Shown: positions 16,801 through 64,000 of the stretch, piece after piece
Position numbering within the stretch: the first letter of the stretch is position 1
Layout of the letters: each line of letters begins with the position of its first letter
Origin: Mobula birostris
Lineage: Eukaryota
Reading direction: 5' to 3'
Length of the DNA stretch: 64,000 nt
Assembly (NCBI RefSeq): GCF_030028105.1
Contig: NC_092384.1
Location: forward strand, 3,825,665-3,889,664
Notes under the pieces: model-generated
Databases searched by the model: none
What the model was told of the DNA's origin: nothing
The model's input: only the letters and a program-made list of their open reading frames with translations
Made by a program: the position numbers and the translations under genes

Positions 16801-17291
16801 GCAACATTGTTTGCGTTATGAGTAACGGAAGCTTTGAAATGTGAGGCGCCCAATGAGGGGAGTTTTTTTTTCCTCCCTGTGTTCCTGAGAAATAAGGAGA
16901 CTCGGCTTTTGTTCCGTGGAGGGTGTCGAGAGAAGAGAGAAGGGAGAGGTCATAGACTACAGGATGGCGTGGACTTGGAATGGGATCGGGAGTCGACGAC
17001 AATGGAGAACGGAGAGCCGGGAAAATCGTGAGGTCCAACGAGTGCATTAGAATGTTTCCTTAAAATGGGCCCTTGATCTTTTTTTTTCTTAAAATAACCC
17101 TATCGTTAAGTTAAGGATCATAAAGCTCAATTATTTAATTGCATGTGGTGTACTGTTCGTTATTTTGTGGTACTGATTTGTAACAGGTGAAAACATCAGG
17201 CAGCATCCACACAAAGAAGGTTTCACCAACTGGTGGGGGCAACGACTGTCTTCTCCTAGACTAACGCAGCCCATTGAGCCTGGAGGTTGCA
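13850..17291 (+). mobile_element. Decayed, internally deleted Gypsy LTR retrotransposon (~3.4 kb) with both LTRs
   Basis: 5' LTR ~13850-14410 and 3' LTR 16752-17291 (TGTCACGCCCTGGG...GGTTGCA), preceded by a purine-rich tract. The 4-bp TSD is TCTG (left) / TCTA (right), and TCTA on the left of copy 2. Protease-like LDKESQVSLLY at ~15040. RT-like DYSTLNRRTVSDQYTVPRTEDAL..LRSGYY at 16099-16359. The frames are broken. Confidence 0.88.
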
Positions 17292-17487
17292 TCTAATTTA
17301 AATATTCATCCCAAGGAACAAAAAACTATCTTTCAGCCTAATTATAATCAAACTAATGGAATTATTGTCAGATACAATTTCTCCCCAGACACATTTCTGT
17401 CACCTGCCCTGTCTCATTTCGTATCCTCCTGATAACATCTGTACCATTAGGTCGTCTGTTATTTTAAATGCCTGCATATCGCCGCAA

Positions 17488-17536
17488 TGACGTCAAAGTG
17501 AAACCAAGATGTAAGGGTTGTGCAGTCCATTTGCAA
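17488..17536 (+). promoter_or_regulatory. Candidate proximal promoter cluster: CRE, IRF-type element, octamer-like motif
   Basis: TGACGTCA (17488-95) directly abuts AAAGTGAAAC (17495-504). ATTTGCAA (17529-36) is one mismatch from the Ig octamer. All lie 100-150 nt upstream of the ATG at 17640. Confidence 0.5.
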
Positions 17537-17639
17537 AACCATTTCCACACGACCCTCGAACAGCTTCTCATCACTGTGCTACGTGATTGAACTTTTGAAA
17601 TACAGTTAATACTGTCTGATTTCATCACTTTTGTTCACA

Positions 17640-17694
17640 ATGCATATATTTGATAAGCTCCTTAATCTCTGGTTCCTGCAGATTGTGTACACAG
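17640..17694 (+). CDS. Exon 1, leader peptide MHIFDKLLNLWFLQIVYT
   Basis: ATG has A at -3. Hydrophobic 18-codon peptide. Phase-1 donor AG|gtatgt, followed by a 245-nt intron to the V exon. Confidence 0.82.
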
Positions 17695-17939
17695 GTATGT
17701 CTACAATTCCGTCGTTGATCTGCAATAACGAGTTGCGAGATATTCGGAATTGTTTGTGACAAGCAGCTGCCCAAGAAGTAAACAGCAGTTTTGTTCTTTT
17801 AAATTGATTTACTTCACTCACAGTCGAATCGATCTATTTCAGTCACAGTGATATTATATATGCATATTTTTATTTTAATATTTTTTGTCAATAAAGCCAA
17901 CCATTATACTCTGATAACTATTGTTTTTCATTCTGACAG

Positions 17940-18260
17940 TTGCTGACAGGGCCTCGATCACAGTGCGCCAGATTCCTGTGAACGAGACTAAGGCAGAGGG
18001 TGCAAATGTGTCAATTTACTGCACCTACCCAATCTTCGCTCAGAACGCAGTGGTGGCTGTTTATTGGTGGAAAGGGGGACAAGAAGGATATATAGATCCT
18101 ACTGCAGACAGAAGGATGAGTATTATAACTACACAGCAAGGTTCTGCCGAATTCCATATCTTCGACCTGAGATTCGGGGACTCTGGAATATTTTATTGCG
18201 GTGTGAGAGACTGGACAGGAACGATTTCCAAAGGCAATGGCACGAACGTTATTGTACACG
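17940..18260 (+). CDS. Exon 2, V-set Ig domain with in-exon J-like G strand
   Basis: Acceptor ttctgacag|, donor |gtaaat, phase 1/1. Cys at 18020 and 18197, YWW C strand, DSGIFYC, and J-like KGNGTNVIV. Confidence 0.95.
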
Positions 18261-18856
18261 GTAAATCTTACTCGGCGTGTCTTAGACAAATGTAACTACT
18301 AAATTAAACGGATCGCGTTAGATATTGATAAAGTACAATAAGAGACCGCCTCTCCATCCACAGTAATATTCTTCATTTCGGGTTTCAATAACCACTGTTC
18401 ACTGTTAGTGGAACAGTGGAATCTCGGAAAGAAAATTGTTCTCTAATTTCATGTGATTTTATGCTCCTTTATAACTGAAGATACATTTCCTGTGATGTAC
18501 ATATAATGAAATATTTATGTCGGTAGATGGGCAGTTAATGGAATAGTATTTTGCATGTGCTAACTGAAATCATTTAATCAAATTCGAGACCTGTGAGTTA
18601 CAGATGATGACGTGCCCTTCGTAAGTTAAGAGTTCAGCCATTACCCGCAGAACATTAAAATCGATTCTGGAGAAAGATCGAGGGCTTTGCCGGCTTATAC
18701 GACGAATAAACTCTTCGCGGGTTTCCAGCAGGATACAGTTATCAATTGTAACCGATATCTCGATGGCATACTCTACCATTCTTGGAAAAGCCCGAGAAGA
18801 GTTTATTTGGACACTCGAGTCTGTCTGTCCCTTTGCAAACAGAAAAATTGAATAAA

Positions 18857-19055
18857 TGTTGCTCAGTCGTTAAGTCGAGTCCGATTCTGCCTGACATCCT
18901 GGACCAGGGAGTCCGGCAGGATGCGGAGTTAGGTTGATAGGCATTTCTTCCGCGCAGATACTGCTGCTGCTGCCCAGGCTGGGACCCGGCTGGGTTTGAA
19001 CTCAGTTCCATCCGCCTTGAAGTCCAGTGCTGATGCACTGAGGTAGTGTTCATTG
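18857..19055 (-). mobile_element. tRNA-headed SINE with RTE/BovB-like 3' tail
   Basis: On the minus strand: A-box-like TACCTCAGTG (19045-36), B-box GTTCAAACCC (19001-18992), and tail cggactcgacttaacgactgagcaaca followed by tttatt. Confidence 0.55.
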
Positions 19056-19059
19056 GTTC

Positions 19060-20000
19060 ATTATCCATGAGGAATCGGATGGCAGAGAGGAAGTAAAACT
19101 TCTTTGAATCACTGAGTGTGTGTCTTCACGCTTCTATACCTCTTTCTCACGGTAATGATGAGAAAAGGACATATCCTGGGTAACGGAAATCCTTAATGAT
19201 GGACTCAGCCCTCCCCAGACACTGCTCCTTGAAGATGTCTTGGATGCTACGGGTGCTAGTACCCATGATAGAAAAGCCTCATTTTATAACTTATTGTAGC
19301 TTCTTTCCATCCAGTACAGTAATCGCTCCCCAGCATACCAGATGGTGATGTAACCTGGCAAAATGCTCTCCTCGTACATCTGTAGAAGTTTTCGAGTGTC
19401 TTAGGTGACAAACCAAATCTCCTCAAACTTCCAGTGAAATATAGTCACTATCTTGTCCCCATTATGGCGATATCGATATACTCGGACCAGGTTAGTTACG
19501 CAGAGATATTGACACCCAGGAACTTGAAATTTCCCACTCTCTTGAAGTCCGAGGTTTGGTTTATTATCCTTCGTCCTACTGTTTTTGAAGTCCTCAGTCA
19601 ACTTTTTGGTCTTACCGATGTTGAGTGCAAGGTGGTTGCTGCAACGCCACTCTGCTAGCTGATACAGCTCGCTCTTGTAAGCCCTCCCCTCTCCATCAGA
19701 GACTCTGCCAACAATTGTCGTATCATTACCAAATGTATTGATGCCATTTTAGCTATGCCTAGCCACATAGCTATGGGTATAGAAAGAGTAGAGCAGTGGG
19801 CTAAGGACACATCCCAGTGCTGCGCCCGTGTTGATCATCTCTGAGGAGGAGTCATTAATACAAAGTGTGGTCTCAGGTTTGCAAGACGAAAATCAAATTG
19901 AAGGAGGAAGTACAGAGGCCCATAGCTTATCGATATGATGGTGATAAATACGCTGTAGTCAGGGAATTGCAAGCAGCATCGTGACAAGGTATTGGTATTG
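19060..20000 (-). mobile_element. Rex1/Babar-like LINE 3' portion, degraded
   Basis: Reverse-strand 3' region (gaggaatcggatggcagagaggaagtaaaact...cttctatacctctttc) with RT-end remnants toward 19700-19830. Confidence 0.65.
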
Positions 20001-23000
20001 TCCTGGTGATCTAAGACCGTCTGAAGAGCCGTTGATTGTGATTCTAGCCCTGTGAGCTACCATATCTGCTGCCTTCAATTCGGATTCTTAAAAATACAGC
20101 AGGGTGCACTATATGAATTCCTCCGTCTGCAACTATTAGGAACTATTACACAGTTTTACAGCACCGCAGTGGTATTGATCGTGTTCTAGATCGTTCTCTG
20201 TTTTATTAAAAAAAAACGTAGTTTATTATTCAGCTTAGAGTAGTTAATCTGTGCAACTCTGCCTAATGAAGCAATAGCGGCTACTTCAGTAAATATATTT
20301 AAGACAAGGTTGGATAAGAGTTTTGCATAGTAGGGAATTAAATGTTATGGGAGAAAGGCAGGTTGGTATGGAGATGAGCCCAAGATCAGATCAGCCATGA
20401 TCTTATTGAATGATGGAGCAGACTTGATGGGTGGGATCGTCTACTTCTGCTCCTATTTCTTATGATCTTATGCACTGAGTTAAACGGTAGAACGTGTAAA
20501 AAAACAAAACAATGATATTAATTATTTTAAATATATTAAAGACTTCATGACATTGTGTGAGTTTCTGTCGTGAATGCGGTATAGCATGTAATATTAAGTT
20601 TTCTTGGAGGCAGCGATTGGTAAAATAAATGGCAGTATGTTTGTTCAGTATGGAGGACAGAACACATTAAATCACACAACTGAACTTTGTATATATAATT
20701 AATGCAACGTGTAACAAAAGGTGGGTCCAAATGAGGTAAAATTAGAAACACTTGTTAAATTCAGAATTTCTAAATATTTAACAGTTGTAACCCTCTTTGC
20801 GATTGCATATCCTTGTTTAACAGCCCGGGGCAGGGACTGTGAACAGAATAAATACCAGTCTAAACTGTCACTGGGAAATGTATAATTTAATTTATTCATC
20901 GATGAAACCCGTAATTTCTGGTCATCATTGAACCATGTATTGGAAGCAACTTTTTTGTTTTTTTTTAATTATGTGCCCTCTTTTCATCTTACGTCTGAAT
21001 TACCACATCGAGCTAGATTGCAAATTACCAAAGCACTATATTGCCCAAAAAAGGGCTGTATTATTCTTTTTGTTCCAACATCATTCTCAGGTCTTTCCCT
21101 CAACTTAGAGACGTTACCCATAAAAAAAAATCTTCTTGATATTCCATACTGAACCGCAGGGAATTTTCATCATTTTGTCTTAGCTTGCTGTAGCCTCAGA
21201 GACAACGCAAAAGCACATAGCCTCCAAAACAACAAACAGACGATGATCCGTGATTTTTAAAAAATAAATATTTCACCAGATTCATTTGAAAGTATGGAAA
21301 ATAGTATAATATATTTGTCATATTTGCTTTATAAATGCTGTTCTGATCACAAGAGAATCGAAGATTTTAGCTTTATTCACCCACTCTTACTGCAATCCCT
21401 GCCTATTATTTTCCTCCTGTTACCTATTCTTTTTCATTCCCTTGGTTTCCCCTGATTCCAGCATGGTCCAACATGCTGACTTCCACAATCATGCGCTCTC
21501 AGTCCTCTGCGTACTGCAATCATCTTTTTGTATTCTTTTACCTGTTGTAATGTTATTTATTCCCGAAATATACGTTTACCACAACTTCTGGAGCCATACA
21601 AAGGCTCTGATGAATATCTTCCACAGAACATCTAGGTTTGCAGATTCAGGATGTAGACCAGACAGCCGGGTAGAATCGGTGAATCGATTCCAAGGAAGGA
21701 TTGAGTTGAGATTTGCAGTGGGTGGATACCGGTATTTTTTTCTTGAATTGGAAGCCTTTGCTCCACCATAGGTTTTGGTTGTACGTATGTCGAAATATCA
21801 CGGAATATTTTGAGATCTCGTCAAAACACAAACTTTGAGGTCTCTGTCAACGTTTCCCACAACCCTTTGTTTCAAACAATTCAAGCACATGTGTGACGGT
21901 GTGCTATTCTCAGGTGACACGGAACTTGCAGTGGGTTCAGAGAATTAGAACCTAGGGGTAGAACGTAGTATGTTAAATAAGAAGAAATTTACTGTGAAAC
22001 AACCAAATAGAGGGGTCGAGTATTTCGTCACTGGTGAGGGGTTGCAAGGTTTGGTAGTCACTGAGTTATGTTGTTCTATGTGTATGTTACATCTGAACCC
22101 CGTCCGGTGAGGAAAATCCCATACTGTCAGAGAGCAGCAAAATGAATGACGGAAGAAACAGTTTATTAAGGAAATAATGGAAATCCAAACATTATAAATT
22201 ACAATACCTGATATTCCAAGGCATTATTGAAGGAATGACATTAAATGTCGCTAAATAACTTACCCCGGAACAAGCTCACTACGCTGTGTTTGGATCATTA
22301 ACGTTATTGATACAGTAATGTATTATTTTTATAGGCAACTGACGACTGGAAATTTACTTTGAAATGATTCGCGTCTTAACGAGCTCAGGACAATGTCCGA
22401 TTACAATCACTTCTTTCATGTTGCTGCTGAATCTGACCTAGCTACACGAACGCCTGCGCCTCTTCTTAAATCGGATATTTTTCTTCTTCATAACTGGATT
22501 TCGAGAAACTCTGCCATGGACGGTCCTTAGAATGCTTGCGAAAGGAGGAGGTTTGGGCCTGAAATAATACTTACGTTAATTTTGGCTCGATTTATTACAT
22601 CTCCGATTTATTTCATTTAGCATTGCCCACCATAATTAATTTCCACTCCAAGCCGATTTAACAAAATTATATCTCCGTGGCGGCAAAGTCATGGTACATT
22701 TTACCTTCTAACTTGAAAGTGCAAATGCAGATCGGCCATGATCTTTAGAAAACAAATTGTTTTTCTTGCATGTTAACAGACAGCAGAAAACTGCAGGAAA
22801 CCTTTTAACCGCTGCAATTGAAAGATTATTAAAATGCACAAAAATCGTTTGATTTTTTTTTCACACGAGTCGTAGGTTCATGCAACCTAGATGGACACTT
22901 CTCAACCCAAATCTGAAATGCCGAACAAACCGCAATATCCCTGAACAGATTTTTTTGCAATTCATTCGCATGCCTGAATATTTTTTGGGGGAGCATTTTC

Positions 23001-25437
23001 ATTTTATCACGCTTCCTCAGCTTCCTTGTGCATGCCTTTACATGTACCAACTGCCAAGTGAGTAGAAAAGGGTACCTTTTAAGTTCAATTTAAACCTACG
23101 CCATTTATTTTAAGTCCATCTCTCCAGTTGCAGACACCAAGAATCTGGGAAGAAGACTCTGAATATCCATGTTATCCAGGTCCTTATAACTTTATAAGCA
23201 TCTATCAGATCACCCTTCGACCTCCTTCTCTGCAGACAAAGAGTCGTAGATTCTCCATGTAAATGAAACCCTCCAGACCCAGTGCTGCACGCATTCATAC
23301 CAGATTAATGACATCTGTGCTGTGCTAGGCCAAGAGAACCGCGGAAAATATCTCTGGTGTGTTCTCACCAACGACTTGTGCAATTTCTGACGTCCGAATT
23401 GCTGACCAATAGGCAGGAATTTCAAAGCGCGTTCTTCGCCACATTACCCATCTGTGTCACTACTTTAAGGGATCAGGCACGGACGGTACTAGAGTTCTGT
23501 TTACGTCAACCCTCCCTATGGAACTACCAATTACTGTTTAAGCCTTGGTCGAATTTAATGTAGAAAATAGTACACATCGCACTGTTAAATATTTCCTGAT
23601 GATTCTCGTATTGCAAACAGGTTTGTTCCGGGGACACATGTTGGAATAAGGAGTCTTAATTGAACACAGTTTAGAACGTTGTTGGATATCCAATCGCATG
23701 TGTGATGAATTCTGAGATATTTAATTATTGTCCTTATAGGAATCTGATCAATTGGCATTTCAATGCCTGCCGATTATACAGAATGATGTTGTGCCGAACT
23801 AATTTCAGCTAATCATTGCAACAAGCACAAGTTCCATATCCTCTCCATATATACTGATTTCCACCTCCAGTCCATTCAGATAGATACCTTTATTCCGTTT
23901 TCTCTAAATAATAACATATTATTAAGCGAGTTACAGAACAGTTGATACAACACTTTTTCCTGTTTTAAAAGTGGCATTTTTTATTTCTGCTTATAAATTG
24001 ATCTGCTTTTCTCACTAAACCTAGTGTAGGATTTACACTCTATACAAGAAGGAGATTTGTTCCATCAGCTTCTTGGGTTTTTCTGTCGCTGCTGAATCAC
24101 ATTCTTAATTGAACTTTTTTTTTTCCTTAAATGGTTTTTGATAGTAACATAACTATTGTATTATGAATTACTCACTGCATCATTATGTCATTAAACAAAA
24201 TCTCGGACATCCTTCTGCAGGAGATTTGTTCTCGCAACTTCTTGGATTTTGCTATTGCTTCTGAATTATGTTCTGAATTGAACGTTCTTCCCTTAAATTG
24301 TTGTTGATAGTAACACAATCTATTGTATTTTGAATTACTCACTGCATCATTTTGCATCACTGTGTCAGTAATCAAAATCTCGGATGTGCTTCTGCATTGT
24401 AAGATTTTGGCCGGTATTCATACTAGATAATGTAGACCATCTTGCGTGCAAAATCTCCTTCCATTAAATTTCTCCAAAAATAGTTAACCTGCGTTTTGTT
24501 ATCAACTCTTCTCGCTTTGTTTTCACTCAATCTCGCCCACCTGATTGGTTCTGTGGAACCAATACTAATCCGAAATGTGGAATTGGTATCTGCAGTGAAG
24601 GTCCCAAATTCAAGATTCAAGATTGCTCCATTAAATTCCTCTACCCAATTATAAAGGAGAATGAAATAATTACTACGCAGGATCTGATAGAATGCAAATA
24701 AACACTTGATAACAACACAATTACTATAAAATACGTTAGCTAAGAGAAGTTTGCTCTACCATCAAATTATTTTTTTCGCTGTAACACGCTGTAAGGTTAT
24801 TGACGTGACTAAACCTGCATATATTTTCAATCGGTATGAAAAGTCGATGAAAAATATAATGGGATTCAAACTGAATTCAGTATTTGCAGAAATAATTCAT
24901 TTGTTTGTGCAATTGGTAGTGGGGTTCTGTTGTTTTGACGTATAACAATTACGACATATGGAATATAAGAAGAATTATGAAGACCTTAGCGGAAATGTTT
25001 TACAGCACAGCACAATAAAGAACGTGCAGAACGTTTTCACAATGTAAATTCAATAATTTATAAAATGTGAATTTAAGATTAGACAACCTAACAGAAACAA
25101 ACTAATCTTATTGTATCTTTTTGCATGTGGAATAAAGATAAATAAATAGTGGCCACGGAGTCATGGGGTAAAGCAGAAAGCTTTTATGTAATTTATCCGT
25201 GATACCTTCACCTGAAACTTCAGTGTTCTATTCAATGAAAAAATAAAAACTAATGAAAATGTATATCGCCTCATAAAACGTCATGGTAAAATACGTAAAC
25301 TACTTGACTTGGGATGAATGTTTTCAAGTTAAATTCAAATTAACACTCCAGGTTGTGAAGAATATTTTTCTGTCAGTGATTATTTTCTCTGATAAAGGCG
25401 CGTTTAGAGATTTTACCTCTTTTTCAACCATTTGCAG

Positions 25438-25716
25438 TTCCGCCGGCGCCGTTGAAAATCACCGAAGTGAACGCTCCTTCCGTGGCTCTGACGTGCACAA
25501 CTGCTGCTTTTTTCCCGAAGGACTATGAGCTCATATGGTATAAAAATGAAGTCGAAATCACTTCTGGAATGCATACCACACAAATGCAGAACAAGGAGGG
25601 ATTATATCTAGTTTCAAGCTCCCTTAATGTAACAGAAAGCTGGTCTGTTTATACTTGCCAAGTATTTCATGAATCTATGAAGGCGCCAGCCTCCGAGTCA
25701 TATAGAATCGGACTAG
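25438..25716 (+). CDS. Exon 3, C1-set Ig constant domain
   Basis: Acceptor tttgcag|, donor |gtaag, phase 1/1. VPPAPLKI..LTCTTAAFFPKDYELIWY..YLVSSSL..YTCQVFH matches the Ig/MHC C1 signature [FY]xCx[VA]xH. Confidence 0.95.
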
Positions 25717-26913
25717 GTAAGAGGCTTATAATCTCAACCGCATGTTTTATGTCTGGCATTTATCAATTCATCACAAACAGAGAGGAAGGGGACATATTCA
25801 AATGGGGAAAGGGAGATGTAAGGCAGTGGCTATACAAAGAAGAGTGAGATATCATATTATACTGCTGCTGTTTCCTGCTTCATGGAATAATATGCAAAAA
25901 TAAATGGCGTAACTCCTTTACTTTTGAAGATCAAGGTTTTCTAAATCCCTGTTATCGGCAATGCAGACTTGTTTTTTTTTATGTTATTTTATCTGATCTC
26001 CACTTTGCACAATCAGATTCACTGAATTATATGACCTGAAATGTGTTGTTGTTTGACAGCAGTACAACGCAGTCATCGACCTACTAGAAGTTACATATAT
26101 AAATCAGTAGTACAAAAATGTTCGCGTAAGGAAAGAAAATGTTTCATAATCGGTGTGTGTGAGTCTTCAGCCATCTCCTCCACGACGGAGCAAAGTGAAG
26201 AATGCATGCACTTTCGACTTTATCTCTAACAGAAATAGACTTTCCTGGACCCTCTCTAACGCGTCACATTCTCACTATAATCGAGCACAATATCACAATA
26301 TCACAGACCATAGTTTAATGAAAATGCAGCATTAGGGTTCACTTCACTTCTTTTAGATTCCATATTTCTACCGACGAATGGCATAAGCCTTATTATCAAA
26401 TTCGGAACTTACCCTGATATGTTATTATCAATAAAAGTAAGCTGCTTTTCCCTTCATCTGGTTTAAAACAACATATTGATATCCCTAATTCTGCACACCA
26501 AGCTGCTACACCTTATGTTAGCCTGCCTGTTCATTATATCAGAGTTCGTATCTGCTGAATTTTGCCGGCACAATTCACAACACTACCTAGAAATTCTGTT
26601 TTGCGCCATTTTATTCTTTGACCTGAGATCGCTTGTGTATATTTTCCAGCCCTCGCTTCAATTCATGCCTTGTCAACTTATTCAACAGTACAGAATTATT
26701 GATGAAAATAAGCGGAATTAAATGGTGATATTATTACTTATTAATGTTCTACGGATAATCCACGTTTTATTTCAATTTGTGATTTATTACTAAGGCAATG
26801 AGCTCAAGATGTGAGAGAAAATATGGATCGGTTTCTTTACGTTCGTGGTGCACGTGTTTCAATTGTTTAATCTCTGTAAAATGCTAATGTTTGACTTCTA
26901 TTGCACACCTCAG

Positions 26914-27024
26914 GAAGCAGAGAAAAGTTCATCTTAATCCTGACGGGTGCACTTGCAGCATGCGGAGCCATTATCCTAGTGCTGTTGTTACTTATGAGGC
27001 GCTGCAGAGTAGACAGGACTGAAG
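26914..27024 (+). CDS. Exon 4, transmembrane segment
   Basis: cctcag| ... |gtaaga, phase 1/1. (G)SREK-FILILTGALAACGAIILVLLLLM-RRCRVDRTE is an uncharged 23-aa helix followed by a basic stop-transfer. Confidence 0.93.
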
Positions 27025-27513
27025 GTAAGACGTTACAATGCCCTGGCCCATATTTAGTTTCACTAGCATATTGGAGTTAAAATGGCCGTGAGAAGGGTAA
27101 AACATCCATGATGAGAAATACGTTTAGGTAGATGTGCTTGAGAGTCTATCTGACAGCTGAGTGTTGTGTGCAGAACAAGATTTAAAACGCATTTTACTCG
27201 ATGTTACTGAATTTTGCAACAACTAAAAACGGTATTGTTAACTCTGCAAGAAATGTTACAAATTTAGAACGTTTGTTGCCGCAGGACAACATATGCCAGC
27301 CACAGAGTTTGAGTAATTCTAGGCAATACAATAGGTCATTTTTTTATTACCAGTAACATCATCATTGGGTGGTTTGATAAAATGACAAGAATGGCATCAG
27401 ATCACTGGCCTATTTCGAACGGATCTGGTTGCTCCCGGAATATTCAATAACATTCGGTGCGCCTGTTCACATGCTGAGGATGAAATTGGTCACTTTTTTA
27501 TTTCCTCTATTAG

Positions 27514-27557
27514 CAGCGGAAAATGATGAGAACTTAAGTCGCTACCTGGAAAATCAG
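27514..27557 (+). CDS. Exon 5, cytoplasmic (AAENDENLSRYLENQ)
   Basis: Polypyrimidine tract plus TAGCAG acceptor, CAG|gtaag donor, phase 1 to 0. Confidence 0.8.
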
Positions 27558-27769
27558 GTAAGATTAATATTATTATGACATATACAGGGGTTTACATATT
27601 TTGTACATACACCTAATATCAGTAACACATAATTAGAGCAACAGAATGGCTGTCACTTTGCGTGTAACACCTTATGTTCTAGGATCGCATGGTTCATTTT
27701 TGTTTTGTATCTCTGGCTTATGTAGTGCAGCATCTTCAGTGATATATTTATTCAGAGGAGTTTCACAAG

Positions 27770-29910
27770 GACAATTCCAGGAATGAAAGCTGTATCACAC
27801 GAGGGAAGTTTGATGACTCTGCATCTGTACTTGCTGGAATTCAAAAGGCTGAGGGGGATCTTACTGAAACCTTTCGAATGTTGAAAGGCCTAGACAAAGT
27901 AGATGTGGAAATGATGTTTCCCGTGGTCGGAGAGTCTCGGACAAGACAGCAAAGCCTCAGGATAGACGGGCGCCCTTCCAGACCGAGAGGCGGAGAATGT
28001 TCTTTAGCCAAAAGTTGTGATTTTTTTTTCCCCGCATATCGCTGTGTAGGCCAATTCATTAGGTGTATTTAAGGCAGAGATGGACAGGCTCTTGATTGAA
28101 CATGGCATCAAAAGTTACGGGAAGAAGGCCGGGAACTGGAGTTCAGGAGAAGAAAGTAAATGATTAGGCATGGTTGAATGGCAGAGCAAACTCGATGGGC
28201 CATATGGCTTAATTCTGCTCCTATGTCTTATGGTCTTCTGGTCTTATTCAGGAACTCGTTAAGTTATCCAAGTCACTACATTTGATATTTTAACTAATCA
28301 GACTGAATGTGCGTGAATCATTTTACTTGAGTCCAGTCATTTTCTAATTGGACATTAATACTAACAAAATAAAGGTTAGGTCGGTAGCTACTGCAGTGGC
28401 ATGCAATTGTTTGGACACCCCGGCCAAAATTTCTGTTACTGTGAATAGTTAAGTGAGTACAAGATGAACTGATCTCCAAAAGTCATAAAGTTAAATATGA
28501 AACATTATTTTCAACATTTTAAATTTAGAGTATTATTGTTGTTTTCTACAATTTTAGAGTGAAAAAATGAAAGGAGACAAAAGGTCGCGATTTTGTGCAA
28601 TTTGTTGCCACTTATAGCTGTGGAGGCCAGGTCATTGGTTGTATTTAAGGCAGAGATGGATTGATTCTTGATTGAGCATGGCATCAAAGGTTACGGGGAC
28701 AAGGCCGGGAACTAGAGTTGAGGAGGAGAAAATAAAGCAGAGCAGACTCGATGGGCCAGATGGCTTAATTCTACTCTGTGTCTTATGGTCTTATGATCTT
28801 ATTCAGGAGCTGTTGAAGTTCCTGGTGCATTTGATATTTTTACCTTATCGGACTGAACCTGCGTGAATCATTTTACTTGAGGCCCATAATTTTCTATTTG
28901 GGCATTCGTACTAACAAAGTAATGTTTAGGATGGTAGATGGTGCTAATATTTGAGAGATTATGGTGTCGACGTCGTCAGACCCCACGACATGGGCGTCAT
29001 CTTTAGAACGTGTCGACATCATAATCTGTCAGAATTCAGCACTAGACACCCTTCTATTTATTTCGTTAGTATATACGCACACACACACGTACACTTGCAA
29101 AGTGTATGGTTATGCACATTGGCAGAAGAAATAAATGGACAGACTATTATTTAAATGGGAAGAGAATTCAAACTACTGAGATGCAACAGGACAGGGGAGT
29201 CCTCGTGCAGGATACCCTTAAGGTTAAACTCCAGGTTGACTCGGTGGTGAAGAGGGCGAATGCAATGTTGGCATTTATTTCTAGAGGAATAGAGTACACT
29301 CGCAGGGATGTGATGCTGAGGCTCTATAAGGCGCTGGTAAGACCTCACTTGGAGTACTGTGGGCACTTTTGGCCTCTTTTTTTTTTAAGAAAGGATGTGC
29401 TGATGTTGTAGAGGGTACAGAGAAGATTCACTAGAATGAGTCCGGGAATGAGAAGGTTAACATGTGTGGTACGTTTTCCCGCTCTCGGACTGTATTCCTT
29501 GGAGTTTAGAAGAATGAGGGGGACCTCATAGAAACATTCGGAATGTTGAAAGGCATGGACAGAGTGGATGTGGCAAAGTTGTTTCCCATGATGGGGGAGT
29601 CTGGAACGAGACGTCATGACTTGAGGATTGAAGGGCGCCCATTCAGAACAGAGATGCGAAGATTTTTATTTTAGCCAGAGGGTGGTGAATCTATGGAATT
29701 TGTTGCCACAGGCGGCAGTGGAGGCCAAGTCATTGGGAGTATTTAAGGCAAAGATTGATATGTATCTGAGCAGTCAGGTCATCAAAGGTTATGGTGAGAA
29801 GGCGGGAGAATGGGACTAAATTGGAGAATGGATCAACTCATGATAAAATGGCCGAGCAGACTCGATGGGCCGAATGGACGAATTCTGCTCCTTTATCTTA
29901 TGGTCTTATG
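27770..29910 (+). mobile_element. Cluster of CR1-type LINE 3' fragments (about 27770-28250, 28590-28800, 29100-29910) with a Tc1 end at ~28395-28580
   Basis: RT C-terminal peptide QVDSVVKRANAMLAFISRGIEY..LVRPHLEYC (29106-29411), repeated cttatggtc tails, and a cagtggcatgc TIR at 28395. Confidence 0.8.
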
Positions 29911-31127
29911 GTCCTTATATATATTATATATTTATGCCATCATCATATCGATGCAATTACAAGGAAGGCATGGCAGAAACTATATTTGATTTGGAGTTTG
30001 AAGAGATTCGGCATGTTATCAAAGACACTAGCAAGTCTGTACAGATATACAGTGCCATGCAAAAGTTTTGGCACCCCGGTCAAAATTTCTGTTACTGTGC
30101 ATAACTAAGCGAGTTAAAGATGACACATTTATTTAAAATTTAAACAGGATTACTTTTTCATTTCCATCGTTTGCAGTTTCAAAATAACAAAAAAAGAAAA
30201 GGTCCCGAAATAAAAGTTTGGGCACCCTGCATGGTCAGTACATAGAAACACCCTCTTTGGTAAGTATCACAGCTCGTAATCGCTTTTTGTAGCCAGCTAA
30301 GTGTCCTTCCATTGTTGGGGTGATTTTCGCCAATTCTCCATGCAAAAGGCTTGTAGTTCTGTGAGATTCTTGGGCAATCTTGAACACACTGCTCCTTTGA
30401 GGTCTATCCATAAATTTTCGATGATGTTAAGGTCGGGGGACTGTAAGGACCATGGCAAAACTTTCAGCTTGCGCCTCTTGAGGTAGTCCGTTCTGGATTT
30501 TAATGTGTGTTTAAGATCATTATCCTGTTGTAGAAACCATCCTCTTTTCCTCTTCTGCTTTTTTGCAGACGGGGTGATGTTTGCTTCCATTATTTGCTGG
30601 TATTTAATTGAATTCGTTCTTCCCTCTACTAGTGAAATCCTTCCCGTGCCCCCGGCTGCAACACAAGCTCAAAGCATGATCGATCCACCCCCGTGCTTAA
30701 CAGTTGGGAGAGGTGTTCTTTTCATGAAATTCTCCACACGTTTTTCCCAAGCATACCTTTGCTTATTGTGGCCATAAAGTTCTATTTTAACTTCATCAGT
30801 CGACAGAACTTATTTTCAAAATGCATCAGGCTTGTTTAGATGTTACTTTTCAAATGTGTGACGCTGACGTTTGTGGTGAGGATGCCGGAAAGGTTTTGGA
30901 GAACAAAGGATGTAGAATTGGATGAACAGTACCCCTCTCCAACTGTTAAGCGCGGGGTTGGACTAATCATGTTTTGGGCTTGTGTTGCAGCCAGTGACAC
31001 AGGGAACATTTCACTTGTAGAGGGAAGAATGAATTCAATTAATACCAGCAATTTCAGGAAGCAAACATCACACCGTCTGTAAAGAAGCTGAAGATAAAAA
31101 GAGAATGGCTTCTACAACAGGACAATG

Positions 31128-31370
31128 ATACAGGGACTAAGGATCGATTAAAAAGAATCGATCTGTGATTATTAGTGCATGAAAGAGCGACCCTGTGAAG
31201 TCTACCAGTGTGTCTAACACTTGCCTGGTTTGGTAGATTATCACTTGAAGACGGCGCTCTGAAGTTGGTCACGTTTGGCCAACTTGGAAGTTTGGGAGGA
31301 CATCGAAGAGGATCGACGACGCCTGTCTACTTGGATTACGAGTCTCTCTGTCTCTCTCTGTCTCTCTCTG

Positions 31371-31429
<59 letters not shown>

Positions 31430-31684
31430 AATCCCGTGGACAGAACTGAATATCCTTACCACACTATCGTAAGACTGTATCAATTACCATCTAAGTTTGA
31501 AGAAGTTTGGGTTTTGTATTTAAACACCTATATATGAATAAACTCTGCTAACCTGTTTGATTTTCTGGCTTTATGTTACTCTATTACATAGCTACTAATA
31601 CAATAGTGTTAGTTAACAGCAAAACCACACTCCAGGTGTCTTCCATTTTGCTGGTTCTTTTAAGCACGTTACGGGGTATGTAAC
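31128..31684. mobile_element. LTR-like fragment containing a (TC)n/(TCTCTG)n microsatellite (~31342-31428)
   Basis: Non-Tc1 sequence with AATAAA at ~31538 and an LTR-like end ggggtatgtaac. The Tc1 sequence resumes immediately after it. Confidence 0.5.
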
Positions 31685-31949
31685 TGTGGATAGCCCGCAA
31701 AAGAGCAGTGGATGCAAGACGGCCCAAGAATCATACAGAGCTAGAAGCCTTTTGCACAGAAGAATGGGCGGAAATCCCCCAAACAAGAATGGAAAGACTT
31801 TTAGCTGTCTGCAAAAAGCGTTTACAAGCTGTGATACTTGCCGAAGGGGGTGTTACTAAGTACTGACCAAGCAGGGTGGCCAATCTTTTGTTTCAGGCCC
31901 TTTTGTTATTTGGAAACTGTAAAAGATGGAAATAAAAATGTAATACTAT

Positions 31950-34575
31950 TACAGCTACAGAAAGTGTGGGTAATGAAGCAGGATCTTCTTTTGAGTCAGT
32001 ATGGGTGGAAGACAGGAACAGGAAGGAAGCAGTTACTCTATTGGGGGTATTCTACAGGCCCCCTGGTAGCAGCAGAGACACAGAGGAGCAGATTGGGTGA
32101 CGGATTTTGGAAAGGTGCAAATATAACAGTGTTGTTGTCATGGGTGACTTTAACTTCCATAATATTGATTGGCACCTGATTAGGTTCAAGGGTTTATATG
32201 GGACAGAGTTTGGTAAATGTGTCCAGGACGGATTCCTGTCACAGTATGTGGACACGCCGACTAGGGGAAATGCCATACTAGATCTATTACAAGGTAATGA
32301 ACAGGATCAGGTCACAGAACTCTCAGTGGGTGAGCACTTGGGGGACAGTGACCACCACTCCCTGGCCGTTAGCATTATCATACAAAAGGATTGAATCAGA
32401 GAGGACAGTTTTTTTTTTAATTGGGGAAGGGCAAATTATGAGGCTAGAAGGCCAGAACCTGCTGGTGTGAATTGTGAAGATGTTTTTGAAGGGAAATGTA
32501 CCATGGACATGTGGTCGATGTTTAGAGATCTCTTGGAAGACGTGAGGGATAAGCATGTCCCGGTGAGGAAGATAAAGAATGGTAGGATGAAGTAACCATG
32601 GGTCACAAGTGCGGTGGAATATCTAGTCAGGTGGAAGAAGGCAGCATACATGAGGTTTAGGAAGCAAGGATCAGATGGGTCTATTGGGGAATATAGGGAT
32701 TCAAGAAAGGAGCTTAGGAAGGGGCTGAGAAGAGCAAGAAGGGGGCATGAGAAGGCCTTGGCGAGTACGGTAAAGGAAAACCCCAAGACATTCTTCAATT
32801 ATGTGAAGAACAAAAGCACGACAGGAGTGAAGGTAGGACCGATTAGAGATAAAAGTGCGAAGATGTGCCTGGAGGGTGTGGAAGTGAGCAAGGTCCTCAA
32901 TGAATACTTTTCTTCGGTACTCACCAATGAGAGGGAATTTGATGATGGAGAGGACAATATGAGTGAGGTTGATGTTCTTGAGCATGCTGATATTAAGGGA
33001 GAGGATGTGTTGGAACTGTTAAAATACATTAGGACGGATAAGTCCCCGGGGTCTGACGGAATATTCCCCCAGGCTGCTCCGCTAGGCAAGGGAGGAGATT
33101 ACTGAGCCTCTGGCTAGGATCTTTATGTCCTCGTTGTCCACGGGGATGGTACCGGAGGTCTGGAGGGTGGCGAATATTGCCTCCTTGTTCAAAAAAGGTA
33201 GTAGGGATAGTCCGGGTAATTATAGACCAGTGAGCCTTGCGTCTGTTGTGGGAAATCTGTTGGAAAAGATTCTTCGAGATAGGATCTATGGGCATTTAGA
33301 GAATCATGGTCTGATCAGGGACAGTCAGCATGGCTTTGTGAAGGGCAGATCGTGTCTAGCAAGCCTGATAATGTTCTTTGAGGAGGTGACCAGGCATATA
33401 GATGAAGGAAGTGCAGTGGATGTGATCTATATGAATTTTAGTAAGGCATTTGAAAAAAGTACCACACGGTACCTTCAGAAAGTCAGAAGGAATGGGATCC
33501 AGGGAAGTTTGGCCAGGTGGATTCAGAATTTGCTTGCCTGCATAGGGTAGAGGGTCGTGGTGGAGGGAGTACATTCAGATTGGAGGATTGTGACTAGTGG
33601 TGTCCCACAAGCATCTGTTCTGTGATCTGTACCTTTCGTGATTTTTATTAACGAACTGGATGTGGGGTTAAAAGGGTGGGTTGGCAATTTTGCAGACGAC
33701 ACAAAGGTTGGTGGTGTTGTACATAGTGTAGAGGATTGTCGAAGATTGCAGACAGACATTGATATGATGCAGAAGTGGGCTGAGAAGTGGCAGATGGAAT
33801 TCACTCCGTAGAAGTGTGAGGTGGTACACTTTGGAAAGATAAACTCCAAGGCAGCGTACAAAGTGAATGGCAGGATGCTTGGTAGTGTGGGGGAGCAGAG
33901 ACATCTTTGGCACATGTCCACAAATTCCTGCAGGTTGCATCACTTGTGGATAGGGTAGTGAAGAAAGTTTATGGGGTGTTAGCTTTCATAAGTCGAGGGA
34001 TAGAGTTTAAGAGTCGCGATGTAATGATGCAGCTCTATAAAACTCTGGTTAGGCCACACTTGGAGTACTGTGTCCAGTTCTGGTCGCCTCACTATAGGAA
34101 GGATGTGGAAACATTGGAAAGGGTGCAGAGGAGAATTACCAGGATGCTGCCTGGTTTAGAGAGTATGCATTATGATCAGAGATTGAGGGAGCTAGGACTT
34201 TACTCTTTGCAGAGAAGGAGGATGAGAGGAGACATGATAGAGCTGTACAAGGTAATAAGAGGAATAGATAGAGTGGATAGCCAGCTCCTCTTCTCCAGGG
34301 CACCACTGCTCAATACATGAGGACATGGCTTTAAGGTAAGGGGTGGGAAGTTCAAGGGGGGTATTAGAGGAAGGTTTTTTATTCAGCGAGTGGTTGGTGT
34401 ATGGAATGCACTCCCTGAGTCAGTAGTGGGGGCAGATACACTAGTGAAGTTTAAGAACGTACTAGACAGTTATATGGAGGAATTTAAGTTGGGGGGTTAT
34501 ATTGGAGGCAGGGTTTGAGGATCGGCACAACATTGTGGGCCGAAGGGTCTGTACTATTCTATGCTATATGTTCTA
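31950..34575 (+). mobile_element. 5'-truncated CR1-type LINE, ORF2 (endonuclease end plus RT) broken by stops and frameshifts
   Basis: VVVMGDFNF, PGNYRPVSLASVVG, SQHGFVKGRSCL, LVRPHLEYCVQFWSPHY, and an (ttctatg)-type tail at ~34555-34577. Confidence 0.92.
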
Positions 34576-34699
34576 TGTAATCTTGCTTAAAATATTAAAG
34601 AAGTGTGTCATCTTTAATTTTATTCCCTTATGGTAACCAGGTAATCTATTACTCGCTCTGCTATTCACATAACAGAAATTTTGGCCGGGGTGCACTCGC

Positions 34700-35955
34700 T
34701 GTTAGGGCTATGGCTTGTCGCAATCATCGTTAGCAAACGCAAGGTGATGCAAATTTCAAAGCTTCATAAATGCCCTGACTACTCAATCCCTGTGCCAACA
34801 AAAGCATCCATGGGCTCCTATAAGCAGCGACCTAGCACTCTGAAAATTAAATTAAATGACGCCCAGAAAGCTGGAGAAGGGAAGGCTATAAGAAGATAGC
34901 GAAGCGTTTTCGGGTAGCTGTTTCCTCAGCCTGTAATGTAATTAGGAAATGACAGTTAACAGGTACAGTGGAGGTCAAATTAAGGTCTGGAAGACCAAGA
35001 AAACTTTCCAAGAGAACTGCTCGTAGGTTTGTTAGAAAGGCAAATCAACACTCACGTTTGACTTCAAAAGACGTTCAGGAAGATTTAGCAGACTCTAGTG
35101 GTGGTACACTGTTCTACTGTGCAGCGATATCTGCACAAATATAACCTTCATGGAGGAGTTATCAGAAGAAAACGTTTCCTGCGTCCTCACCATAAAAGTC
35201 AGCATCAGACGTTTGCAAAGTAACATCTAAACTAGCCTGATGCATTTTGAATACAAGTCCTGTGGACTGATGAAGTTAAGATAGGACTTTTTGGCCGCAA
35301 TAAGCAAAGGTATATTTAGAGTAAAAAAAAAAGGTGAGAAATTTCCTGAAAGAAACATCTCTCCCACTGTTAAGCACGGGGTGGATTGATCATGATTTGA
35401 GCTTGTGTTGCAGCCAGCGGCACGGAGACCATTACACCGGTAGAGGGAGGAATGAATTCAATTACATACCAGCAAATTCCGGAAGCAAACATCACACAGT
35501 CTGTAAAAAAGCTGAAGATGGAAAGAGGATGACTTCTACAACAGGATAATGATCCTGAATACACTTGAAAGTCCTCAATGGACTGCCTCAAGAGGCGCAA
35601 CTGAGGATATCGTCATGGCCCTCACAGTCCCCTGACATAAACATCATTGAAATTCAAAAGAGCAGTGCATGCAAGACGGCCCAAGAATCTCACAGAACTA
35701 GATACCTGCCAAAGTGGTTGTTACTAAGTACTGACAGGCAGGGTGCCCAAACTTTTGCTTCGGGCCCTTTTCCTTTGTTTTTTTTGGTATTTTCAATCTG
35801 TAAAAGATGGAAATAAAAAAGTAAGCATGCTTAAAATATTAAAGAAATGCGTCATCTTTAACTTTACGTCTTTTCGAAATCAGGTCATCTTTTACTCGCG
35901 TATTCACAGTAACAGAAATTTTGAACAGGGATGCCCAAACATTTGCATGCCACTG
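34700..35955 (+). mobile_element. Tc1/mariner transposon lacking its 5' TIR, transposase pseudogene
   Basis: HTH-region MGSYKQRPSTLKIK, DDE motifs WTDE, QQDND and WPSQSPDINIIE. The 3' TIR ...tttgcatgccactg|TA ends at 35955. Confidence 0.9.
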
Positions 35956-36072
35956 TATATATAGGCGAATACACGAGCTCACCAACTGTTTGGGAAAATC
36001 AGACGGACTGTTTTTTTTTTCTGTATACATTTATATCTTCCAATTTCCGTCAAGTAATCATGCGTTTCACAG

Positions 36073-36090
36073 GAATACAATGCACTGAAG
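36073..36090 (+). CDS. Probable 18-nt cytoplasmic micro-exon (EYNALK)
   Basis: T/C-rich tract plus tttcacag| GAATACAATGCACTGAAG |gtacga. Phase 0/0, so it preserves the frame. An 84-nt intron follows, similar to the next 88-nt intron. Confidence 0.6.
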
Positions 36091-36174
36091 GTACGATTAA
36101 TCTTGTTTTCTGATCCACAGTGTGTTGGTTATTGCAGAGTTAATTGAAATATAAAAAAAAATTGTTTTTCTCAG

Positions 36175-36282
36175 GCTTCCGAAATTCAGGATATCGGCAG
36201 TCCTTCTTATGCAGATCTAGACTTTAGAAGGGATAATAAAAACAAGGAAGTCAGATCTGAAGCCGAACTCACTAATGCACTG
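36175..36282 (+). CDS. Cytoplasmic exon with YADL motif (ASEIQDIGSPSYADLDF...ELTNAL)
   Basis: tttttctcag| ... CTG|gtaag, 108 nt, phase 0/0. Confidence 0.88.
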
Positions 36283-36370
36283 GTAAGATAAAAGAGAGAG
36301 TTCACCGCACAAATCAGTTTTTCAAAGTACTGGATCAGCAGCTCTTTACCTCTAATTATTGTTTCCACAG

Positions 36371-36538
36371 ATCATACAAGGAACTGAGGATAAATTGATG
36401 TATGCATGCGTGAATCTCGCCGCTTCTCAGAAAAACGCAAGAAGAGTGCAGAAGACTCATGGGACCGAGTATGCAGGAATAAAGATAAAGGAAAAGGCGA
36501 GAAAGCTGGAGACGAAAAGAGCACCATATAGCGATTGA
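36371..36538 (+). CDS. Last coding exon with ITIM LMYACV (36395-36412) and ITSM TEYAGI (36464-36481)
   Basis: tttccacag| acceptor, phase 0, 55 codons plus TGA. Confidence 0.9.
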   Translation: MIQGTEDKLMYACVNLAASQKNARRVQKTHGTEYAGIKIKEKARKLETKRAPYSD

Positions 36539-45379: not shown

Positions 45380-45509
45380 NNNNNNNNNNNNNNNNNNNNN
45401 NNNNNNNNNNNNNNNNNNNNNNNNNNNNNNNNNNNNNNNNNNNNNNNNNNNNNNNNNNNNNNNNNNNNNNNNNNNNNNNNNNNNNNNNNNNNNNNNNNNN
45501 NNNNNNNNN
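45380..45509. other. Assembly gap (130 N)
   Basis: Run of N. It corresponds to the (TCTT)n microsatellite and the 5' half of the hammerhead in copy 1 (about 4356-4440). Confidence 1.
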
Positions 45510-63800: not shown

Positions 63801-64000
63801 TACTTTTCTCCTTAGTACTTTTTGCTTCTACCCTCACTTTACACCCCTCTGTCTCTCTGCACTGGTTCCCATCCCCCTCTTGTGAACTAACCTCCTCATG
63901 CCTAGCCTCTTTAATTTGATTCCCACCCCCCAACCATTCTAGTTTAAAGTCACCTCAGTAGCACCTTCTAATCTCCCTGCCAGGATATTGGTCCTCCTAG
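60805..64000 (-). mobile_element. Relatively young CR1-type LINE (ORF2 APE endonuclease plus RT, few lesions), running off the window
   Basis: (CATAGAAA)x3 tail at 60805. RT 61035-61877 (YINDLDEG..KFADDTK, RPHLEYC) and endonuclease 62929-63933 (VNARSIRNK, GITETWL, MGDFN, ILDWVL). The ORF is split by a few stops and frameshifts. Confidence 0.95.

Follow-up and report, generated by a model that had tools for sequence, protein, structure and literature searches.

The gene described here lies on the plus strand of a 64,000-nucleotide (nt) stretch of Mobula birostris DNA (contig NC_092384.1, positions 3,825,665 to 3,889,664), hereafter called the window. It spans positions 17640-36538 and, read from the window sequence, has seven exons, all with canonical GT-AG splice sites. 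Joined together, these encode a protein of 361 amino acids (aa) that is 100% identical to RefSeq XP_072135199.1 (P0001) from the 86.2-Mb Mobula birostris chromosome record. An earlier reading of the letters alone, made without database searches (the sequence-only reading), had guessed that the gene would be automatically annotated as SIRP-like, and the RefSeq label is indeed SIRP-alpha-like. Its core proposal holds: the product is an elasmobranch transmembrane protein in which V(J)-C1 is joined in the germline and the tail is of the inhibitory type. In brief, the leader, the V domain with an in-exon J-like strand, the single C1 domain, the transmembrane (TM) segment and the tail that it listed are all present (Table 1), and the V, C1 and TM exons are each of phase 1-1, as it had claimed. 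When the window was searched by tblastn with the exons of this gene and with 193 related proteins as queries, no second V exon and no second C1 exon turned up.

Table 1. Positions of the receptor gene's exons and motifs, and of the transposon debris in intron 5, in the window
Feature	Position	Strand	Size, phase and support
5' untranslated part of exon 1, minimum extent	17565..17639	+	start of the 451-nt X5 RNA contig
Exon 1, start codon, leader MHIFDKLLNLWFLQIVYT and 1 nt	17640..17694	+	55 nt, end phase 1; X5 joint 17694-17940
Exon 2, V-set with germline-joined J-like G strand	17940..18260	+	321 nt, phase 1-1; Pfam, RNA contigs
J-like strand G117-N-G119-T-N-V-I-V124 (GxGTxVxV)	18233..18256	+	family alignments
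Exon 3, single C1-set domain	25438..25716	+	279 nt, phase 1-1; Pfam, PDB phmmer, VIA-align, X1 contig
Exon 4, short stalk, TM helix (residues 224-246) and juxtamembrane RRCRVDRTE	26914..27024	+	111 nt, phase 1-1
Exon 5, cytoplasmic AAENDENLSRYLENQ	27514..27557	+	44 nt, phase 1 to 0; X2 joint 27024-27514
Exon 6, cytoplasmic; Y282 in SPSYADL at 36199-36219	36175..36282	+	108 nt, phase 0-0; conserved in relatives as [L/V]xYAxL
Exon 7, ITIM LMYACV at 36395-36412 (Y317), ITSM TEYAGI at 36464-36481 (Y340), stop at 36536-36538	36371..36538	+	168 nt including stop; conserved motif positions
Transposon debris in the 8.6-kb intron 5, outside the protein	30297..34320	.	Pfam DDE_3 (-), RVT_1 (+), repeat depth

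Exon 2 encodes a V-set domain (Pfam E-value 1.1e-08, above the curated cut-off), in which Cys46, Trp61 and Cys105 are conserved in the family alignment. The exon ends in KGNGTNVIVH, which follows the J-like pattern GxGTxVxV, and a GT splice donor stands immediately after it. The two glycines of this strand, G117 and G119, are nearly invariant, both in an alignment of 25 full-length sequences and in one of 45 V domains. The sequence-only reading had held that V and J are joined in the germline, without a recombination signal sequence (RSS), and this was borne out: V and J form a single exon ending at the GT donor. No RSS-like site was found on either strand of 17000-27100, using a heptamer with at most one mismatch, a spacer of 12 or 23 (+/-1) and a nonamer with at most two mismatches.

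Exon 3 encodes a C1-set domain (Pfam E-value 8.7e-15; score 55.3 bits, cut-off 21), with secondary Pfam matches to C2-set_2 (31.7 bits) and C2-set_3 (24.0 bits). Its phmmer matches in the PDB are immunoglobulin (Ig) constant domains. Taken alone, the C1 domain superposes on MHC II beta2 and alpha2, IgNAR C1 and CL at a root-mean-square deviation (rmsd) of 1.2-2.0 Å in VIA-align.

The TM segment, FILILTGALAACGAIILVLLLLM (residues 224-246), has no charged residue, as had been claimed, and the ectodomain lacks a stalk cysteine. The cytoplasmic tail of 115 aa contains YADL (Y282), an immunoreceptor tyrosine-based inhibitory motif (ITIM), LMYACV (Y317), and an immunoreceptor tyrosine-based switch motif (ITSM), TEYAGI (Y340). 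The spacing from Y317 to Y340 is 23 residues. The long tail with an ITIM and an ITSM in the sequence-only reading could thus be located, and no B30.2 domain was found in it.

Assembled RNA contigs support this structure. A 358-nt contig from run X1 covers 18017-18260 and continues with 114 letters (TTCCGCCGGCGCC...) that are the start of the C1 exon, lying on 25437-25550. It is a direct V-C1 splice in Mobula birostris itself, with 2 mismatches in 244 nt, and run X4 has the same loose end at 18260. A contig from run X2 joins 27024 to 27514 with GT..AG, and contigs from runs X2 and X3 start the TM exon at 26913/26914. Run X5 comes from a sister species (~97% identity); its 451-nt contig joins 17694 to 17940, and the 5' untranslated region in it reaches to at least 17565. 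The splice-support check that had been proposed therefore came out with the leader-V, V-C1 and TM-exon 5 joints at the predicted sites. Exons 6 and 7 lie outside the stretches compared with RNA contigs, and their support comes only from the RefSeq model and from their conservation among relatives. The absence of spliced transcripts had been named as the sign of a pseudogene; we rejected that reading, as the frame is intact, canonical splice sites flank seven exons out of seven, and spliced RNA contigs match at 99-100%.

The letters of the X5 contig after 18260 resemble the TM exon, not C1, and therefore a V-only form, with C1 skipped, exists in the sister species. Such a form is also annotated, as the M. 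hypostoma RefSeq isoform P0141 and as isoform X2 (P0002) of the neighbouring paralogue. Splicing that skips C1 probably yields a V-only short form from the window gene too. The V-only form of the sister species is an NKp30-like single-V receptor in which the inhibitory tail is unchanged.

Two other contigs should be mentioned. A low-depth contig of 190 nt from run X3, with 5 mismatches, joins 25500-25584 via 23 unmatched letters to 26914-26993; it may come from the paralogue, an aberrant splice or an assembly chimera. A 302-nt contig from run X1 (depth 6.4) lies entirely within intron 4 (27122-27423), pointing to unspliced RNA or to a little DNA among the sequenced material.

An exhaustive phmmer search with the V exon against 1.84 billion representatives gave 134 matches at E <= 0.001. 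In about 60 of the 134, V is followed directly by a C1 like that of the window gene, and many of these have a TM segment and ITIM/ITSM-type tail tyrosines. All V-C1 matches for which the source was looked up are chondrichthyan. They come from rays (Mobula, Hemitrygon, Hypanus, Amblyraja, Narcine), sharks (Scyliorhinus, Heterodontus, Heptranchias, Cetorhinus, Carcharodon, Mustelus, Chiloscyllium, Hemiscyllium, Stegostoma) and a chimaera (Callorhinchus). Searches with the family alignment likewise gave almost only chondrichthyan proteins among the matches listed. Outside the chondrichthyans, the looked-up V matches belong to reptile and amphibian receptors with several V domains, ~25-30% identical; no bony-vertebrate V-C1 protein was seen at E <= 0.001 among the V-search matches with source looked up. 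Members of the family are automatically named SIRP-alpha-like, SIRP-beta-like, tapasin-related-like, NCR3 ligand 1-like, CD276 homolog, Ig lambda-1 light chain-like or uncharacterized. With five different names for one family, the automatic naming of these genes is unreliable.

The window gene is one copy of a tandem cluster, in a multigene family that is widespread in cartilaginous fish. In Callorhinchus milii, more C1-set genes of the family lie on either side of P0151 within 10 kb (MU249845.1, 15.60-15.62 Mb), and the tandem arrangement is therefore also present in the chimaera. The V domains of the family are mutually 25-50% identical. Most relatives have one C1 domain, and a skate relative (P0061) is V-C1-C1. 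In a maximum-likelihood tree of 40 ectodomains of the family, the window gene, its paralogue, one stingray sequence and sequences of four sharks form a clade with support 100/100. A long branch sets this clade off from the other subfamilies, including P0028 and P0060 of Callorhinchus. Within its family, the window gene is an ordinary member.

We found no published description of the family; a prior description is possible, as key papers on shark NCR3 and on VJ-C1 genes lay outside our search. Within those limits the suggestion that the gene may be functionally uncharacterised stands. The gene, already predicted in RefSeq, adds a new and uncharacterised member to a known type of receptor.

Comparison of protein identities between paralogues and orthologues indicates that M. 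birostris and M. hypostoma have two V lineages in common. The V domain of the window gene is 92-94% identical to P0141/P0142 of M. hypostoma, and that of the paralogue P0137 is 93.5% identical to P0138/P0140; between the two Mobula V lineages identity is ~70-74%. The two M. birostris paralogues are 72% identical in V, 86% in C1 and 99.3% in the TM segment plus tail, and M. birostris tails are 83-87% identical to M. hypostoma tails. These values suggest that gene conversion may homogenise the 3' exons within a species, with the V exons remaining distinct.

One M. hypostoma locus, LOC134356409 (P0142/P0143), is a RefSeq model whose ectodomain is ~92% identical to that of the window gene, but it ends in a different hydrophobic segment, LCRILLGLLVITVGIALIV, which contains an Arg, and its tail is very short. 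This could be an activating partner or a mis-predicted exon. We found no alternative "activating" TM exon in the window, and the alternative segment of LOC134356409 gave only chance-level matches there (29-44% identity, E 0.14-0.37), at 28193-28246 and 29863-29955.

Taken together, we consider it likely that this intact, transcribed gene encodes a 361-aa type I membrane glycoprotein of a cartilaginous-fish family of non-rearranging V(J)-C1 proteins, with the SIRPs as nearest known relatives, and that it acts as an inhibitory receptor recruiting SHP-1/2. A V domain apt to bind a ligand, an uncharged TM segment and an ITIM and ITSM 23 residues apart are what lead us to suggest an inhibitory receptor. 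The membrane-distal V domain, with its germline antigen-receptor-type GxG bulge, would bind a putative ligand. Upon engagement, Src-family kinases would phosphorylate the ITIM at Y317 and the ITSM at Y340, and possibly Y282. The doubly phosphorylated Y317/Y340 pair would then recruit the tandem-SH2 phosphatases SHP-1/SHP-2, and these would dampen activation of the cell bearing the receptor, presumably a leukocyte.

Tails of this kind occur in several receptors. PD-1-type receptors have an ITIM/ITSM signature and recruit SHP-1/SHP-2 after phosphorylation by Src-family kinases. In PD-1 and Siglec tails a membrane-proximal ITIM is followed ~20-25 residues on by TxYxx(I/V), as in the window gene, and its TEYAGIKI resembles the Siglec-type motif TEYSEI. 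The ectodomains of PD-1 and the Siglecs are, however, unrelated in architecture, being V only or V plus C2-set. The SIRP-alpha tail recruits SHP-1/SHP-2 after Src-family phosphorylation (PMC12975943), and its motif ITYADLNL-(24)-TEYASIQT has served as a docking module for SHP-2 (PMC5589908).

Among known families SIRP-alpha comes nearest, judged by predicted structure, by language-model features and by how the tail tyrosines are laid out. The AlphaFold model of V-C1 (predicted local distance difference test, pLDDT, 90.8; predicted TM-score, pTM, 0.83) gave its top TM-scores in AFDB Swiss-Prot with D1-D2 of SIRP-alpha/beta (0.74-0.76, rmsd ~4 Å, ~222 residues). Scores were 0.61-0.72 for PD-L1, 0.66-0.69 for butyrophilins and 0.67 for TAPBPL; Ig light chains and a T-cell receptor (TCR) beta chain reached 0.41-0.43. 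In the ESM-Atlas the SIRP-alpha clusters are the nearest (score 0.96, 204-206 of 256 features). The family V-C1 profile is colinear with SIRP-alpha 2wng, at 121 bits.

Several traits are common to SIRP and the window gene. Both have a membrane-distal, germline-joined V-set domain with a J-like G strand (in the window gene: Pfam V-set, GxG, no RSS-like site) and C1-set sequence behind it, and SIRP-alpha also has an uncharged TM segment and tyrosines of the type xTYAxL / TEYAxI. The family tail has four conserved tyrosine positions from chimaera to rays ([L/V]xYAxLxL, T(V/E)YAxx, LTYAxLDL and TEYAxI in the family alignment), and in the consensus xxYAxLxL...T(V/E)YAxx...LTYAxLDL...TEYAxI the first two tyrosines have the arrangement of the SIRP-alpha peptide (PMC5589908). 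SIRPs form paired, expanded gene clusters, and V-only splice variants and expanded clusters are found in the family of the window gene as well; the SIRP variants are D1-only (PMC12975943). The differences are that SIRPs have two C1 domains whereas the window gene has one, and that the SIRP-alpha tail has four tyrosines in two pairs whereas the window gene has one ITIM-ITSM pair and an orphan YADL.

It should be noted that a number of observations weigh against a SIRP-like inhibitory receptor. Ig chains and UrIg2 match the family V-C1 profile as well as or better than SIRP does. The top VIA-align matches of V-C1 are Rst/Neph1 D1-D2, B7-H6, butyrophilins and PD-L2 (Z 15-17), with SIRP outside the first 50. 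Siglecs also have ITIM/ITSM tails of this style, with CD33/Siglec clusters among the Atlas matches, and the similarity of the tail to that of SIRP may therefore be convergent. In the tail itself, the YxxL motif at Y282 has a Pro at -2, where an ITIM has I/V/L/S, which makes it non-canonical as an ITIM, and the family's second tyrosine (TVYAQT) has been lost. Given this loss and the Pro at -2 of the first motif, the working signalling unit is probably Y317/Y340. What the protein does beyond its motifs is something that we infer, and its expression in leukocytes is assumed.

Ranking the known families by profile score was tried and dropped. In searches of the PDB with the V-domain profile, multi-Ig chains (titin, ROBO, contactin) dominate the whole-chain scores, and the order of the matches is uninformative as to kinship. 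With the V-C1 profile, more Ig domains give a higher score, and SIRP-alpha, Ig and UrIg2 are inseparable.

The gene could also be a true (co-)orthologue of SIRP-alpha, whose V domain would bind an elasmobranch CD47 and give a myeloid "don't eat me" signal. The RefSeq name, the top TM-scores of the predicted structure, the nearest Atlas clusters and the family's four-tyrosine tail, arranged like that of SIRP-alpha, agree with this, and so does the V-C1-C1 structure of the skate relative P0061. We nevertheless regard orthology as possible at best and on the whole unlikely. The window gene has one C1 domain, not two, and with the V domain alone SIRP falls outside the best 60 PDB matches in phmmer. 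The large tandem expansion with fast-diverging V domains is not what one expects of a receptor dedicated to one conserved ligand, and the relatives bear five different automatic names. As the sequence of the ectodomain does not single out SIRP and there is only one C1, we call the gene SIRP-like in its build and, probably, in its function, without assigning it to the SIRP family.

A more speculative view, to which we attach a low probability, is that the V(J)-C1-ITIM family would be a separate old lineage near the common stock of SIRP and NKp30. By exon skipping, a single gene would yield V-C1 forms like a TCR chain as well as V-only forms like NKp30, with tails homogenised by gene conversion and V exons that diversify.

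The domain order also invites comparison with antigen receptors. The sequence-only reading had described the architecture as that of a TCR or Ig light chain. This is correct for the order and the types of the domains, as Ig light chains and TCR chains likewise have V followed by C1-set, but not for their geometry: the predicted V-C1 model is extended like the ectodomains of SIRP and the B7 family and not bent like Ig light or TCR chains (TM-scores 0.74-0.76 for SIRP against 0.41-0.43). Moreover, rearranging Ig light chain and TCR genes have separate V and J segments with RSS, whereas V and J share one exon here. PRARP VJ-C1 genes of chicken and other non-mammalian species were reportedly described by Fu et al. 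in 2019 (cited in PMC10751288) and discussed as a remnant of an antigen-receptor precursor. They resemble the window gene as V(J)-C1-TM proteins without rearrangement, a likeness by description only.

The gene might be read as a relative, still present today, of the antigen-receptor precursor from before RAG, of the PRARP or UrIg kind. It would then work as a paired chain, forming homo- or heterodimers via V and C1 like TCR and Ig chains. The V(J)-C1-TM structure, the phase-1 exons and the GxG strand are what one would look for, and the isolated V domain has its best VIA-align superpositions with IgNAR V, CD79b and TCR-delta V. UrIg and UrIg2 are, like the window gene, elasmobranch and non-rearranging, with a single-exon VJ followed by C1-type domains, and the family profile matches UrIg2 (9dmx) at 138 bits, a score to which its three C domains add unduly. 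UrIg, a secreted product of the liver, contains three C domains, whereas UrIg2 forms a disulfide-linked dimer and contains nine to eleven (PMC12227049). The window gene, in contrast, has one C1 and a TM segment and is without a stalk cysteine, and no ITIM/ITSM tail is reported for UrIg or UrIg2. The monomer model is also predicted to be extended, not elbowed. We think that such a relationship has only a slim chance of being correct.

Still less probable is a C1-bearing member of a shark and ray NKp30 (NCR3) family that would recognise a B7-H6-like ligand. The sequence-only reading had pointed to a likeness between the V end and NKp30. The similarity is real, with NKp30 among the phmmer matches of the V exon in the PDB at E 0.014-0.019, but it is weak and local (only residues 65-105 align) and ranks under pIgR D1, TCR-alpha V, VHH and VNAR. 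NKp30 has a non-rearranging VJ domain, and its F-G region and GNGT(x)(L/V)xV strand are similar to those of the window gene, where AEFHIFDLR..DSGIFYC..GNGTNVIV aligns with human NKp30. A V-only isoform, as seen in the sister species and for the paralogue (P0002), would match the domain content of NKp30, and a multigene NCR3 family has been reported in sharks (accessions cited in PMC12227049). NKp30, however, is V-only and without a C domain, whereas the main transcript of the window gene joins V to C1. Mammalian NKp30 has a charged TM residue and signals through CD3-zeta, in contrast to the uncharged TM segment and inhibitory-type tail found here. None of the ~70 named relatives carries the name NKp30 or NCR3 receptor.

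In B7 proteins and butyrophilins, too, the ectodomain is an extended V plus C; the likeness of the window-gene model (VIA-align Z 15-17) is one of arrangement and does not prove kinship. Most B7 proteins have short tails, and a B30.2 domain is typical of butyrophilins. That the gene encodes a ligand of this type, showing a V-C ectodomain to a receptor on another cell, is highly improbable: VIA-align ranks the B7-H6, B7-H3, BTN2A1/3A1, PD-L1 and PD-L2 ectodomains at Z 15-17, PD-L1 and CD276 stand high in the AFDB search, some relatives are automatically named CD276 or NCR3LG1-like, and there are the secondary C2-set_2 and C2-set_3 matches, but the C domain is C1-set far ahead of the CD80-like and BTN-type models (55.3 against 31.7 and 24.0 bits), the GxG of the J-like strand is nearly invariant in the family, and the long tail with its conserved ITIM/ITSM pair marks a signalling receptor.

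The window outside the receptor gene appears to be transposon debris. Within intron 5 there is a Tc1-like DDE_3 remnant on the minus strand (Pfam E-value 1.5e-05) and remnants of a long interspersed nuclear element (LINE) reverse transcriptase on the plus strand (Pfam RVT_1, E-value 5.4e-07), and this debris has a very high repeat depth in all RNA runs. Further LINE remnants, with endonuclease and reverse-transcriptase domains, lie on the minus strand at 61035-63933. A G+C-rich tandem array at 47318-49399 (37-bp unit, 56 copies, 96% matches) is the source of long spurious open reading frames in several frames, and an assembly gap of 130 N is found at 45380-45509.

Germline-joined VJ-C1 genes are candidate relatives of the gene that was split by the RAG transposon into antibodies and T-cell receptors, and work on shark UrIg/UrIg2 shows that the topic is active (PMC12227049). 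If the family were a separate lineage, it would serve as a present-day model for the origin of single-V receptors (NKp30) and of V-C1 receptors (SIRP, antigen-receptor chains) from one precursor. Occurring from chimaera to rays, the family provides more non-rearranging V and C1 domains for trees of Ig, TCR, SIRP and NKp30. In the oldest jawed vertebrates, its members probably act as inhibitory checkpoint receptors.

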